Part shown: positions 31,251 to 64,000 of the stretch, in pieces
Position numbering within the stretch: position 1 is the first letter of the stretch
Layout: every line of letters begins with the position of its first letter
Assembly (NCBI GenBank): GCA_965113315.1
Contig: OZ220376.1
Source of the DNA: Podarcis vaucheri
Taxonomy: Eukaryota
Length of the DNA stretch: 64,000 nt
Strand: one strand, 5' to 3'
Position numbers and translations under genes: made by a program
The notes under the pieces: model-generated
Told to the model about the DNA's origin: nothing
Seen by the model: the letters and a program-made list of their open reading frames with translations, nothing else
Database searches by the model: none

Positions 31251-31434
31251 GCACATAGCAAGCTGCTTTCTGTTGAGTCAGAACATTTGCTCCAGTCTAG
31301 CTCAGTATTTTCAACCTTGCAGCAGATCTCCAAGGTTTCTGGCAGGGATCTCTCCCATCTGTGGAGAAGCTACCAGGGATTGAACCTGAGATCTTCTGCA
31401 TGGGAAAAATTTGCTATATCACTGAGCTATAGCT
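31251..31434 (-). mobile_element. Squam3-like SINE
   Basis: ctagctcagtatt...ctccaaggtttc...gggattgaacctgagatcttctgcatg...cactgagctatagc. Confidence 0.7.
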
Positions 31435-31477
31435 TCTTTTTTTAACCTCTTAGAAGAGTGGTTGACTTGCACAAACT

Positions 31478-42434: not shown

Positions 42435-42638
42435 NNNNNNNNNNNNNNNNNNNNNNNNNNNNNNNNNNNNNNNNNNNNNNNNNNNNNNNNNNNNNNNNNN
42501 NNNNNNNNNNNNNNNNNNNNNNNNNNNNNNNNNNNNNNNNNNNNNNNNNNNNNNNNNNNNNNNNNNNNNNNNNNNNNNNNNNNNNNNNNNNNNNNNNNNN
42601 NNNNNNNNNNNNNNNNNNNNNNNNNNNNNNNNNNNNNN
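42435..42638. other. Assembly gap (204 N)
   Basis: Run of N. Confidence 1.
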
Positions 42639-52824: not shown

Positions 52825-52944
52825 GGCCACCTCTTCATTGTCCAGTACAATGACGGGAATGCTGAGGTCGTCTCCATGTGGGTCTGCCGGATGTTAGAGG
52901 AGAGGCGTTCGCAGCAGCAGCAGCAGCAGCAGGGATCTCAGTGA
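52825..52944 (+). CDS. MAP2K5: MAP2K5 terminal coding exon (GHLFIVQYNDGNAEVVSMWVCRMLEERRSQQQQQQQGSQ*)
   Basis: cttcttttcag|GGCCAC...CAGTGA. Matches the MEK5 C-terminus; stop TGA at 52942-52944. Confidence 0.96.
   Translation, partial: GHLFIVQYNDGNAEVVSMWVCRMLEERRSQQQQQQQGSQ
52912..52932 (+). repeat. MAP2K5: (CAG)7 coding repeat (poly-Gln) in the last MAP2K5 exon
   Basis: Seven uninterrupted in-frame CAG codons. Confidence 0.95.
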
Positions 52945-58234: not shown

Positions 58235-59149
58235 GGGGGGGTGTTCCTCAACAGCTGATCCACCACACATTCTGGCCAAGAGAGAAATGCATAGCCAACA
58301 GATGAGATGACTCTAAAGACAGGTGAGTGGAAGGCTGCCTCTGTTTTTTGCCTGCGTGTACGTGTTTGGTTGTGTGAACCAACGATCCAGCAAGCGATTC
58401 CCGCAGCTGGATGCTGTGCTGGAAAAGCTTTCACCCCCCCCCCGCCTCTTTTTCATCCACTTCTCCAAGGCTTTTTCTTTTCCCAAGGGCCTGATCACTC
58501 AAGCACCTCCGTCTCTCCCAGCGTGTGGAAAGTGGGAGGGAGCGGGGTTGCGGGGAGAGAAGGAGGGCCAACTAAAGCGTTAATTGTGCCTTTTTAGCTC
58601 ATGTTCGGCCGGCAGCAGGAGAAGGCGCTGCTTAAACCTAATCAATAAAGTCTTGTCTATTGATCGTGTAAATTTCATTTGGCAACCGTCACTTACCAGT
58701 CTCTCCCACTGAGCCGCGAGAGAGGCAAGGGCAGACTCGTCCCCCGCCCCGCAGTAAGCTGCTTTGGGGGACGGGCCCTGAGTCTTTGGCGCGGCTTTCA
58801 TGTGTGAATTTGAAGAAAGGGATGCTGTGCCCAAGTGGAAATGCAGAAACCCGCTCTTTCTAAGCCAGGGCCTTTGCAATATGTTCTCTGGCCCGCGATG
58901 ACCTTGGGTGGGTGGGGGATACGTCTAAGTGCTGTTGGATGAGTGGGCGTGCCTGGACTTGCACTTGCCCCATTCCTAAACGGCCTTGACTGGAACCAGG
59001 CGACACTACCTGCGGATTGGGACCATGTCTCTGGGCCCTCCGCCCTGAGCGCCATACTGGAGAAACACCAAGGGCTGTGCTGAGTAGGAGTGGATGCAAA
59101 TACCGCAATGAATGGATCTTGGCGCGGCAACTGGCCGTCGGATTCCCGC

Positions 59150-59170
59150 GTCTCTCTCCAGGGTCCTGAA
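59150..59170 (-). promoter_or_regulatory. RE1/NRSE-like site (degenerate)
   Basis: Minus strand TTCAGGACCCTGGAGAGAGAC vs consensus TTCAGCACCNNGGACAGCGCC. Confidence 0.5.
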
Positions 59171-59201
59171 GGCTCCCTAACCCGCCCGCGTCTGCCTCCG
59201 C

Positions 59202-59222
59202 GTCGCTCTCCGAGGTGCTGAA
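59202..59222 (-). promoter_or_regulatory. RE1/NRSE (REST binding site)
   Basis: Minus strand TTCAGCACCTCGGAGAGCGAC: perfect left half, GGAGAG right-half variant. Confidence 0.8.
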
Positions 59223-60814
59223 GGTCCCTTGACCTGAGGAGCCAACTACCAAGGCAGAGGGTGCAGGTTCCTTCAGTCTTTTACCTACTCCTGGCGGTGG
59301 GGAGAGGCTCTCTTTCTCCTCCCGCCTGCCCCGGGGGTCGCCTCTCTCTGTTGGCGGCGCCTCTGACCTCTGCCCGCCCCGTCCAGGTTGATTACTCCAT
59401 CAGGCCCGTCCGGGTGTGCCAAGGCTGTAAAGAGCCATTACCCGGATTCTTTTATCAATGTCCAGTAATTAAAATGTCACCGTTTAATTTTCAGGCCTTC
59501 TCGGAGCAATCTTTTCCTAATAAAGAGTCTAATCGAAAGGCTATTCGCCACCCTCCCACCCGAAAATGGCACCGGCAGGCGGGCTGCTGCGGCGGAGCGA
59601 GGCCCCCGCGCGGATCGATAGCGAGAGGGCTGGGATTGATCTGCCGCTAAAATGAAATTTATTGGGGTCATGGTTTTATATGGTGCTGATACAACTGTTA
59701 AATGGGGGACATTCGTTTCCAATAGGAGGCGTTTATTAAACTTCCACTGAATTAGACCGCGGTGATTTATGGGGCAATCTCCCGCCTGCGAGCCCCTCCA
59801 GGAACGAGAGCGGGGAAGGAAGGGCCTTGGCGGCCTCCTCTTAGAGAGATATTTATAAAGAGATGACACGGGCCTCTGAGTTTTAAGCCGGAGTGGCGAG
59901 GAAAGGACTTTCGAGGGACGTGACAAGGAGGCAAAGGATCGGGAGGCAGACGGAGGGTGGGTGGGGGAACCTAAAAGGGTGAGCCACCCAAGCCCACCAG
60001 CGCCACGTGTGACGGTCTCACCCCCGCCAGAGTTCCCTACTCAGTTCAGGAATTTCCAACAGACTGGACAGAAAGTCTGGAGTAACATGGGTCTGCACGA
60101 CTGCAAGCCTACCCAGGTTTTCTGCTAGCCGCCCTGAGCACGGTTGGGTGGAAAGGCGGGGTGCAAAAATAAGGAGTAAAATAAAAGCAGGAAACAGGGA
60201 GTAAGTCCCATTGAGGGCGCTGGGACTCCGAATCGACACTGATCTGCTTGTGCGCCCATTACCCAGCCGAAATATTCCAAGACCAGCTCACGGGGCCAAC
60301 TTTCCTGCCGACTGTCTTTTGTCACGAGACTTTAGGTCATCGGAATCAAAAGCATCTTACAAGGGTGGGCCTTCCCTCGCCGCTTCACTGGTACCTTGTT
60401 TTGGCTGAAATACACGGATTAACAGCAGAGCGGAAGAGGAGGTGCTGGATTAACGCACGAACGGTCGAAGGGGTTGCTGTGAGGTCTCCCTTTTAAAACA
60501 AAACTTTGGAAACTCCCACTCCAAGCCTTCCCGAGAATTTTTCCCCCCAAGTAACACTTGCACCTTTGATTTGACTTGATCACAGCAGAGGTTGTGACAA
60601 GCCATTCCCCCTTTCCTCACTAGCGACTGGCATGATAACACTTTCCCCCGTTCCTCCAGCTGTCCCATTTTAAAGAAGAACCCCCATCGCCACCCATTCT
60701 CCTCCTGCGCAAACAGCTTTCTCATTCCCCCTTGGGGGCAGGAAGAGGAGAGGAGTATAAAGCGAGGAACAAGGGGTGGGGTTCTGTTTGGCAATCCAAG
60801 TGGGCCGGGCGGGG

Positions 60815-60955
60815 GGAGCGTCTGCTTTGCATGCAGAAGGACCCAGGTACAATCCTGGCATCTCTAGGTAGAGCAGGAAGAGATTCCTTGCCTGAAACTC
60901 TGGAGAGCCACAGAATACGGAGCTTAGACTCAATATAAACCCATTTCCTGTGTTC
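60815..60955 (+). mobile_element. Squam3-like SINE
   Basis: gagcgtctgctttgcatgcagaaggacccaggtacaatcctggcatctctaggtag...cctgaaactctggagagcc. Confidence 0.8.
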
Positions 60956-61053
60956 GATATATGGGATGCGGAAGGAAATCGGTCATTCAAGTACACGCTG
61001 CGATTTTACTCTGTGAACCGCCCTGAGACCTGCGGGTATATAGGGTGGAAGAA

Positions 61054-61116
61054 AAGAAGAAGAAGAAGAAGAAGAAGAAGAAGAAGAAGAAGAAGAAGAA
61101 GAAGAAGAAGAAGAAG
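61054..61116. repeat. (AAG)21 trinucleotide repeat
   Basis: Read directly, uninterrupted. Confidence 0.95.
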
Positions 61117-62679
61117 AGGCAGCCAAGCTGAGAAAATGAAGGGGGTGGGCCAAGGAGGATCCACCCTAGCTCTCCAGTACTTCGAGGTTCCCATCTCTGC
61201 CGCCACATGCCCCCTCTGTTTGACAGGGCTCAGGCTCTGCGGTGTGTTCTTGTAGTGTGGGTGAATAGGTGGCTATAGATATGGCGGAGATTGGATGGCG
61301 GATGCAGGGCTGGATACATGGTTAGAGAGGTTCTTGTTTTTCCCTCTGAGTTTGCTTGCTTGCTTGCTTGCTTGTTTGTTTAAGTTATATCCCACCCTTC
61401 CTCCCAACGGAGCTCAGGGCAGCAAACACACAATGCTCATCTTGTGGCAGTTAGTTCCTTGGGTCCATTGGACATGTCGTAAGATAGTGTTTTCCTTGAA
61501 CACAAGCTTGCTTGTAAACAGCCTAAGGGGCCAGGAGTGTGCCTGCAGATTCTTCTCCACTATAGACCCTCTTGGTCTTTCAAGGTGCTGCGCCCACAAC
61601 CTCTCCAGCAACCCCTGCTTGGAGGGCCAGCTCCCGCTCATATTTCAAAACAAGGGACAAAAGTAGAGACTCTCAGCCATCTCCTTCACCCACACTCCCT
61701 CAGAAAAACAACAACCCGTGTATATCCCCCCAAAACCCCTTGCATTGGGCGATCATTGAGTTTTAATTAAAAATTGTTACAATTAAACCCAACACACACG
61801 CACGTGCGCACACATGCCTTAATTACATTTGATTTTTAATTCCAAATCCGTGTTTACACAGTAAGCGAGACGTACCTCCTGATTATCCCCAATACTCTTT
61901 ATACTGTACTAATTATGTAAATTAAACCTAATTAACTGACAAAAAACTGCAGTTAATTCAACTGTTAAAAGATATGGGATCGCAAGGAGCTTAAGAGAAG
62001 CAATGAAAGGATAAGGGGAGCGGATACCTTCCTGGGGAGGGCTCTCCCCTTCCTGTTTGCACTGGGAGAAGGCAGGTGGGGGTTAGTTATGAACTAGGCA
62101 CTGGCTGTTAAAGTTAAAAAAGGTCGGTTGTCGTCGTTGGCTTTCCCCGATAAAGATCTGAGACCTCCAGAGCGACACGAGAGGTCAAAAGGAAGATTTT
62201 GAACGGCCGCCCCATGGCTCCTTAATCAATGTTCCCACTTCACTCGCTCCCACCCCACCGCTTGCTCCCCTCCCTCCCCTTAATCCCGAAACAGCACTGG
62301 AAACAATATTATTTCTGGCTGTGGTATAGTATCTGGGCGAGAAATGCAAGCATGCTTCTAAGTGCGCACCCTCCCTAACAATGAGCGGAGAATATTTTGT
62401 CGGAGCTGTTGGGCAGCAGAATGGATATCCTGCTGCGCCGAAACTTCAGTCCCTCCAAATTCCCATGTAAGGGGGAGGATTATGAGAGACCTCAAAAGGC
62501 AGCTGCTAGCCTTGCTTGTTGCTTTTATGCTCTCTTGGAAAGGTGGGGGGGGAGGGAGAAGTTAGAGAGGGGTGCTGCTCCCTGCTAATGTTCTTATAGG
62601 GTGGGGGCATGTGGTATAGAGTCCTTCGTCTCACAACTTCCCCGAACGGTGTTATTCGGACAGCGCCTTCTTTTACAAT

Positions 62680-62700
62680 GGCGCTGTCTCAGGTGCTGAA
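62680..62700 (-). promoter_or_regulatory. RE1/NRSE (REST binding site)
   Basis: Minus strand TTCAGCACCTGAGACAGCGCC (one core mismatch). Confidence 0.8.
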
Positions 62701-62762
62701 ACCACCGGTGCAGGTCGAATACCTGCAGCAACCGCAAGTGCGGGCCTCCGGCTAGGGGTCAG

Positions 62763-62783
62763 TTCAGCACCTGGGACAGCGCA
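62763..62783 (+). promoter_or_regulatory. RE1/NRSE (REST binding site), canonical
   Basis: TTCAGCACCTGGGACAGCGCA: both half-sites intact with a 2-bp spacer. Confidence 0.88.
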
Positions 62784-64000
62784 GCGCTAGGCGACGCCCG
62801 ACGATACCTTCCTTTTAAACCGATCGCGACAGGAGGAGAAGGCCGATTCGCCTCTGCGACTTTGGAACCGGTCACTTTTGATTCCAATCGCTGCTCTCTC
62901 GGAGTTAATGTCTGGGCGGCCCACAGTCCAAATAACGCCCCCCCCCTCTGCTTTTCACATTAAATCACCAGGACTAGAGTGGGCGAGACAATGCGGTCTT
63001 GCCCATTTACAAGCTAAGGCCTGAAGTTTGCATTCCTGAGATTTCACTCCTGAAAGCGCGTCAAAGCCTCTACTCGTAGTTATTTGTAATAACATGGTCT
63101 TGGCTATCTCAGGCCTTTGGTACGTGGTGGAATACATACCCAGGTAAATTAATAAATAGCATATCCCGCTTTCCCCAAACTTCCTGGGTGGTTAAGAGAC
63201 TCATCCTTCTGGACAGGGCTAGACTTGTACCGACGACCTCTTAAACCAGACTCGTTTCCTCCCAGCGCAAAGCAATCAGGGTTGTTAAAATCAGCCAACT
63301 TTGGGGACTGCGGCGGGGTCCATCTCGGTTAGCTATTTGTAGGACAAGGTTTCTGGTTAGAAACGAGTCCAGAGCTCTCTGCTCCATCCTCCCAAATTCG
63401 TTCCTGGGGTTAGACTGCCTTCTTCACTTTTGGAAGAGGAGGGGCCGCCCCGGGATGACGCCGGAGCAAACGATCTGCCACTATTTTAAATTGAGACCCC
63501 CCCCCGCTCGCCAGAAACACTTCGGGGTCCCCTGATGACTCAGTCGTCTGTCGGGAAGCAACTTCCCTCGGTGTGGCAAACTTTACCTCCCTCTGCGCCC
63601 CCCCTTCCCAGTTCACCGCCCCCCTTCGGGGTTGCTTTTGCAATTGACACTCTGGGCTAACAGACGGGTCTAATATCAACCGCGCTGCAGAGGTTAAGAG
63701 CCCTGGGGCGAAGGGCGGCGGGGCGGGAGGGGGGGCGAAGAGAGAGGGGGAGGAGGGAGGGGGAGGGAAGAGAGATCGGATTAAATACGGCGCTTTGTAA
63801 GTATTTAAAATTACATTTAATCTCCGCGTTCCACGTTTGTTTATTTGCTCGGTTTTGTAACAAAACAAAACATAGAGTTTCAACATAAAACATTAAACCA
63901 TCACGAACTGTGAATTATTCTAATAAAAATATATATTAAAAAAACCCCCGAAGGAAACACCTCCCTTCTTTCAAAACCAAATAAATATGCCACCAAATTA

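Follow-up and report, generated by a model that had tools for sequence, protein, structure and literature searches.

The stretch of DNA analyzed here (the window) comprises 64,000 nucleotides from the lizard Podarcis vaucheri, read 5' to 3' on one strand of contig OZ220376.1 (GenBank assembly GCA_965113315.1). It contains collinear pieces of the MAP2K5 gene and, 9.7 kb downstream of the MAP2K5 stop codon, two closely spaced matches to repressor element 1 (RE1, or NRSE), with a second group of RE1-type motifs 3.5 kb upstream of them. REST (also NRSF) is a zinc-finger repressor that binds the 21-bp RE1/NRSE and recruits the Sin3/HDAC and CoREST/LSD1/G9a co-repressor complexes. The gene expected next downstream is SKOR1, a lineage-restricted neuronal co-repressor whose old name is LBXCOR1 (Lbxcor1 in the mouse), and the RE1 cluster is a candidate REST silencer of that gene.

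RE1 elements downstream of MAP2K5

The cluster is made up of the following elements.

62680-62700, minus strand: RE1a, a canonical 21-bp RE1/NRSE reading TTCAGCACCTGAGACAGCGCC, with a sole mismatch, G12 to A.
62763-62783, plus strand: RE1b, a canonical 21-bp RE1/NRSE reading TTCAGCACCTGGGACAGCGCA, with its final base as the sole mismatch.
62658-62667, plus strand: a lone RE1 right half-site reading GGACAGCGCC, with 12 bp between it and the right half of RE1a, which it faces.
59202-59222, minus strand: RE1c, a canonical RE1 reading TTCAGCACCTCGGAGAGCGAC, with two mismatches, 3.5 kb upstream of the pair.
59150-59170, minus strand: RE1d, a degenerate RE1-like copy reading TTCAGGACCCTGGAGAGAGAC, with four mismatches.

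The window was scanned with the RE1 consensus TTCAGCACCNNGGACAGCGCC, allowing up to three mismatches, and counts were compared with those from 100 dinucleotide-preserving shuffles of the same 64 kb. Three matches are present (RE1a, RE1b and RE1c) against an expectation of 0.01, and none of the 100 shuffles reached three. The degenerate consensus TYAGMRCCNNRGMSAG, which is said to be that of Bruce et al. 2004, returns the identical three matches against 0.05 expected, and it permits the G12 to A change of RE1a, since this position is written R. Chance occurrence is ruled out by these shuffles under either consensus. All three sites also have the bipartite RE1 layout of a left half TTCAGCACC, a 2-bp spacer and a right half GGACAGCGCC, the half-sites being defined as positions 1-9 and 12-21 of JASPAR MA0138.2 (PMC9903721). 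The original prediction, made from the sequence and without database searches, had described RE1a and RE1b as full 21-bp elements on opposite strands, with an extra right half-site facing the first of them, and this description was confirmed, each full element departing from the consensus at one base.

The right half-site at 62658-62667 is the only exact copy of that half in the window (0.04 expected). When the bases around it are read directly, no left half-site is found either 2 bp or 8-9 bp upstream. RE1c and RE1d lie head-to-tail with a 52-bp period (59146-59235), and their 3' flanks (gcggaggcagacgcggg and gcgggaatccgacgg) are only partly alike. Judged by its motifs, the cluster consists of genuine RE1/NRSE elements: a pair with a lone half-site, and a head-to-tail pair 3.5 kb upstream.

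The strength of the lizard sites can be gauged from near-identical mouse sites whose binding has been tabulated. The mouse site TTCAGCACCTGAGACAGCACC, one base from RE1a, has a position weight matrix (PWM) score of 0.9386, is enriched in chromatin immunoprecipitation on arrays (ChIP-chip) from embryonic stem (ES) cells, and belongs to the ES-cell set obtained by chromatin immunoprecipitation with paired-end ditags (ChIP-PET) (Johnson 2008, PMC2573930). Two mouse sites lying two bases from RE1b, TTCAGCACCTGGGACAGCGGC and TTCAGCACCTGGGACAGCTCA (the latter ending in CAGCTCA), are bound in ChIP-PET, while TTCAGCACCTGGGACAGGGCT (ending in CAGGGCT), three bases away, scores 0.9478 and is enriched in E14, NS5 and NIH3T3 cells (PMC2573930). 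For RE1c, the mouse site TTCAGCACCTCGGAGAGCGGC differs by one base and is bound in both ES cells and neural stem cells (PMC2573930). The differences between lizard and mouse sites sit in weakly constrained 3' positions, which for the PWM-scored mouse sites are positions 18-21. Since these near-identical sites are bound, two of them with PWM scores of 0.94-0.95 set against an empirical binding cutoff of 0.91 for the RE1 position-specific scoring matrix (PSSM) (Johnson 2006, PMC1557810), RE1a, RE1b and RE1c are all expected to be high-affinity RE1s.

The sites might alternatively have fallen out of use by REST, as RE1-like relics or neutral matches to the motif. RE1 turnover is indeed frequent, and REST fails to bind many RE1-like sequences (PMC1557810). 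Non-binding relics, however, are typically degenerate and fall below the cutoff, whereas RE1a and RE1b each stand one mismatch from the consensus, and bound mouse sites show mismatches of both kinds. RE1d provides an example of decay at the same locus. Moreover, the CpGs inside the motifs have been preserved while CpG is depleted outside the surrounding domain (see below). We therefore find it decidedly unlikely that these motifs are unused.

The inverted repeat and its spacer

RE1a and RE1b make up the palindrome of the original prediction. A repeat search recovers the 20-bp inverted repeat with one mismatch that had been reported: its arms, at 62681-62700 and 62763-62782, are 20 nt long and 95% complementary, and 62 nt separate them. 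Between the two elements lies one further feature.

62701-62762, no strand: the spacer of the RE1 pair, 62 bp, with two small hairpin-forming palindromes.

The pair is head-to-head, so that the left halves (TTCAGCACC) point inward and the right halves outward. When RE1a and RE1b are aligned by motif, the cores are identical at 19 of 21 positions, and the 30-nt flanks agree at only 9 of 30 and 8 of 30, which is random. Because the flanks are unrelated and the similarity ends at the motif edges, the "palindrome" is two oppositely oriented RE1s. Likeness confined to the motif is what two sites would show if each were held to that motif. The inverted repeat is thus a by-product of one long motif being present twice in opposite directions, and has no structural function of its own. 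A recent inverted duplication was considered as its origin and is ruled out, as the similarity of the arms stops at the edges of the RE1 motif. Nothing accordingly supports treating the compact palindromic module of the original prediction as special, although its components are where they were said to be.

An inverted repeat of this kind could also mark the ends of a small non-autonomous transposon, as its terminal inverted repeats, or belong to a repeat family that carries an RE1 and was spread by transposition. Many mammalian RE1s have been duplicated by transposable elements (Johnson 2006, PMC1557810), and in size and shape a unit of 102 bp bounded by 20-bp inverted ends resembles a miniature inverted-repeat transposable element. 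Yet no target-site duplication of 2-10 bp surrounds 62681-62782, 62680-62783 or 62658-62783, and the arms coincide exactly with the 21-bp RE1, with nothing beyond it matching. In the rest of the 64 kb there is no further copy at up to three mismatches except RE1c, whose flanks are different. Transposon ends were rejected for the lack of both a target-site duplication and flank similarity, and descent from a mobile element is very unlikely.

The palindrome might instead act as a structure, either as an RNA hairpin if the region is transcribed or as a DNA cruciform, rather than as a set of protein-binding sites. Folded as RNA, the two strands reach -74.1 and -72.7 kcal/mol (z = -5.6 and -5.9 against shuffles), and the DNA fold reaches -39.8 kcal/mol (z = -8.5). 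Any inverted repeat of 20 bp, though, automatically has such stability. In the predicted fold, a multibranch loop of 62 nt is closed by a 20-bp stem, which is not the geometry of a microRNA precursor, with its stem of about 30 bp and its small loop; a loop of 62 nt is also far too large for easy cruciform extrusion. Rfam searches, which covered 62000-64000 and 1-61879, place no family over the module, and a structured RNA was rejected for this reason and for the wrong geometry. Finally, the stem is exactly the RE1 motif, which under a structural explanation would be a coincidence expected about 0.01 times per window. A structural role is extremely unlikely.

The two small hairpins that had been described in the spacer are present. 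The first (62709-62727) has a 7-bp stem and a 5-nt loop, and the second (62732-62743) a 5-bp stem and a 2-nt loop. Dinucleotide shuffling of the spacer yields a perfect hairpin of at least 7 bp in 2.4% of cases and the two hairpins jointly in 0.3%; in folding energy the spacer is ordinary (z = -1.3). The hairpins are marginal, and at best weakly non-random.

Close RE1 pairs are well known from the human genome, where 27 lie within 100 bp of each other and none do so in random sets (Johnson 2006, PMC1557810). Like the lizard pair, the human close pairs such as those of SNAP25, L1CAM and KCNN4 are canonical RE1s within 100 bp of each other, next to a neuronal gene, which for the lizard pair would be SKOR1 (PMC1557810). 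At SNAP25 and L1CAM, the paired sites outperform single ones in recruiting REST (PMC1557810). All 27 human pairs, however, are head-to-tail (P = 7e-9; PMC1557810), whereas the lizard pair at 62.7 kb is head-to-head, and its flanks bear no sign of the tandem duplication that would explain a head-to-tail order. The lizard RE1c/RE1d pair (59150-59222) has the usual head-to-tail form. A literature search for reports of head-to-head RE1 pairs found none. Strong and weak RE1s are also combined around one gene at CACNA1A, and are only partly conserved between species (Johnson 2006, PMC1557810). Those sites are spread over a large gene, whereas the four lizard motifs and the half-site fall in a 3.6-kb part of a CpG-rich upstream domain. 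Multi-RE1 silencers being well known, the head-to-head orientation is the only unusual feature of the lizard cluster.

Arrangements of half-sites such as the lone one at 62658-62667, which converges on the right half of RE1a, have been catalogued in the MPRAduo study (PMC9903721). Silencing in that genome-wide reporter assay was confined to canonical motifs and to half-sites spaced 8-9 bp apart (PMC9903721). Unlike these silencing classes, the lizard half-site has no left partner at 2 or 8-9 bp. It is therefore not expected to silence alone, and is probably a relic or a minor helper.

The geometry of the pair lends itself to a further proposal. The centers of RE1a and RE1b are 83 bp apart, or about 7.9 helical turns; at close to eight turns the two sites share the same face of the helix, and the distance is less than one nucleosome length. 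In both sites the two free positions of the spacer are TG, so that each contains an embedded CACCTG/CAGGTG E-box (62690-62695 and 62768-62773). One other such E-box occurs in 62000-64000, and the window average is 0.64 per kb. The head-to-head, same-face geometry could then be functional in itself, with two REST molecules silencing bidirectionally or cooperatively and E-box factors (of the basic helix-loop-helix or ZEB/SNAI type) acting through these sites after REST is lost, in a repressor-to-activator switch for SKOR1. To this proposal we give little credence.

MAP2K5, the CpG-rich domain and the mouse interval

The genomic setting of the cluster is defined by two features.

52825-52944, plus strand: the last coding exon of MAP2K5, with the stop codon at 52942-52944.
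58501-64000, no strand: a CpG-rich domain, with a CpG observed/expected ratio of 0.43-0.87 in 500-bp bins and a GC content of 0.49-0.59.

The last exon has 87% identity to residues 420-450 of a 452-amino-acid protein with PB1 and Pkinase domains, whose UniRef name is dual specificity mitogen-activated protein kinase kinase 5. A six-frame scan places five collinear plus-strand peptides at about 2995, 19341, 29306, 32597 and 52828; the query peptides are ones that we take to be those of MAP2K5, the last exon alone having been checked by search. The C-terminal tail ends in seven glutamines (RRSQQQQQQQGSQ-stop, 52915-52941). Other vertebrate MAP2K5 matches end around residues 32-35 of the 39-residue query, before most of the glutamine run, and a PDB sequence search with this tail gave no match. 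Inside a MAP2K5 intron, on the minus strand at 31365-31436, there is a match to tRNA (Rfam RF00005, 36.2 bits, E = 6e-4), which is probably a tRNA-derived short interspersed nuclear element (SINE) or a pseudogene. Runs of N occupy 18531-19180 and 42435-42638.

The CpG-rich domain starts abruptly about 5.6 kb past the MAP2K5 stop codon, after bins at 0.05-0.06. The observed/expected ratio has a median of 0.20 over 1-58000 and is 0.77 around the RE1 pair, and every RE1 motif falls inside the domain. CpG richness around the pair fits a germline-unmethylated regulatory domain. The domain as a whole (58501-64000) resembles the unmethylated upstream domain of a developmental gene. Between the two RE1 groups, at 60800-61118, is a SINE-like element that ends in a (GAA)n microsatellite of about 60 bp, and an AT-rich block with dense homeodomain-type TAAT cores follows at about 61770-61960. 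Downstream of the pair, an open reading frame extends over 63413-63886. GC boxes and a polypurine tract are found at 63713-63775, and a consensus splice donor, GTAAGT, comes after them at 63797-63802. About 1 kb past the RE1 pair, this segment (63713-63802) could hold a promoter and the end of a first exon that is non-coding.

In the mouse, REST occupancy of the corresponding interval has been measured. In E14 ES cells, ChIP-PET cluster 9.62945 (overlap 11) lies at chr9:62949224-62949268, and in NS5 neural stem cells cluster 9.62948 (overlap 15) lies at chr9:62949263-62949283 (Johnson 2008, PMC2573930, Dataset S4). The annotation of the two clusters puts them 4.2 kb 5' of Lbxcor1 and 12.5 kb 3' of Map2k5 (PMC2573930). 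A canonical RE1 at Lbxcor1 itself (chr9:62945203, PWM 0.9016) is enriched in ChIP-chip from both E14 and NS5 cells (PMC2573930). Like the lizard cluster, the REST-bound mouse region lies downstream of Map2k5 and has multiple RE1-type motifs, and it is upstream of Lbxcor1, as the lizard cluster would be of SKOR1 (PMC2573930, Datasets S1-S4). The motifs tabulated for the mouse clusters, TTCAGCACCGCGAACAGCAGT (located at the gene) and GGTAGCACCTAGGAGAGATGC, share one strand and are different from the lizard sites. REST thus occupies the Map2k5-Lbxcor1 interval in a mammal, at a position relative to Map2k5 similar to that of the lizard pair. These supplementary tables of the 2008 mouse ChIP-PET study are the sole trace of REST at SKOR1 found in the literature; no SKOR1 entry was found in the supplements of the other REST papers examined.

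The lizard RE1s could nonetheless bind REST and serve a target other than SKOR1, such as MAP2K5 itself, a neuronal gene farther away or an unannotated transcript of the CpG-rich domain. SKOR1 lies outside the window, the GC boxes, polypurine tract and GTAAGT described above could mark a first exon about 1 kb downstream, and REST sites are able to act across tens of kilobases. On the other hand, Lbxcor1 (4.2 kb, 5') and Map2k5 (12.5 kb, 3') are the nearest genes to the mouse REST cluster. MAP2K5 is broadly expressed, and its promoter is past the other end of the window. No known RNA gene was found by Rfam between MAP2K5 and the RE1 module. On balance, a target other than SKOR1 is unlikely.

A putative REST silencer of SKOR1

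The mechanism that we propose for the cluster is as follows. In non-neural cells and neural progenitors, one REST molecule would bind each full RE1 and bring in the co-repressor complexes at the cluster. Compared with a single site, the clustered sites would be occupied to a higher degree and would silence the next downstream gene more robustly. That gene would be SKOR1, by conserved synteny, and the loss of REST in neurons would lift the block. We consider it reasonably likely that the RE1 cluster, bound by REST, silences the next downstream gene, probably SKOR1, in non-neural and progenitor cells. In zebrafish, NRSE/RE1 silencing operates in a REST-dependent manner (PMC3529185). Because RE1 silencing works in zebrafish, the REST system spans vertebrates that bracket the lizards. 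The multi-site REST silencer for SKOR1 put forward in the original prediction is thus partly upheld: the strong motifs, MAP2K5 at 9.7 kb and the occupied mouse interval speak for it, and the lone half-site, not being expected to silence alone, does not.

Several points weigh against this reading. Podarcis itself shows the quality, non-random number and arrangement of the motifs and their place next to MAP2K5; from these and the mouse occupancy we infer that REST binds in the lizard, that silencing follows and that SKOR1 is its target. The window stops at 64000, before SKOR1, whose adjacency is deduced from synteny. The strength of the RE1s is an estimate by way of the near-identical mouse sites (PMC2573930 tables). 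In those tables, the canonical motifs assigned to the two clusters are 0.4-4 kb away from the ChIP-PET summit, and base-level orthology of the lizard and mouse sites is therefore unproven. Lastly, SKOR1/LBXCOR1 is not discussed as a REST target in the main texts searched, which contain only irrelevant co-mentions.

The MAP2K5/SKOR1 interval is a risk locus for restless legs syndrome. The lizard cluster is a further case of the known multi-RE1 REST silencer clusters, in an uncommon head-to-head orientation, and its compact 126-bp element is suited to testing the roles of RE1 orientation and helical phasing. Apart from that, it adds one to the thousands of RE1 clusters. The presence of a strong cluster of several RE1s at the same location in a reptile would suggest that REST control of SKOR1 is ancient in amniotes.

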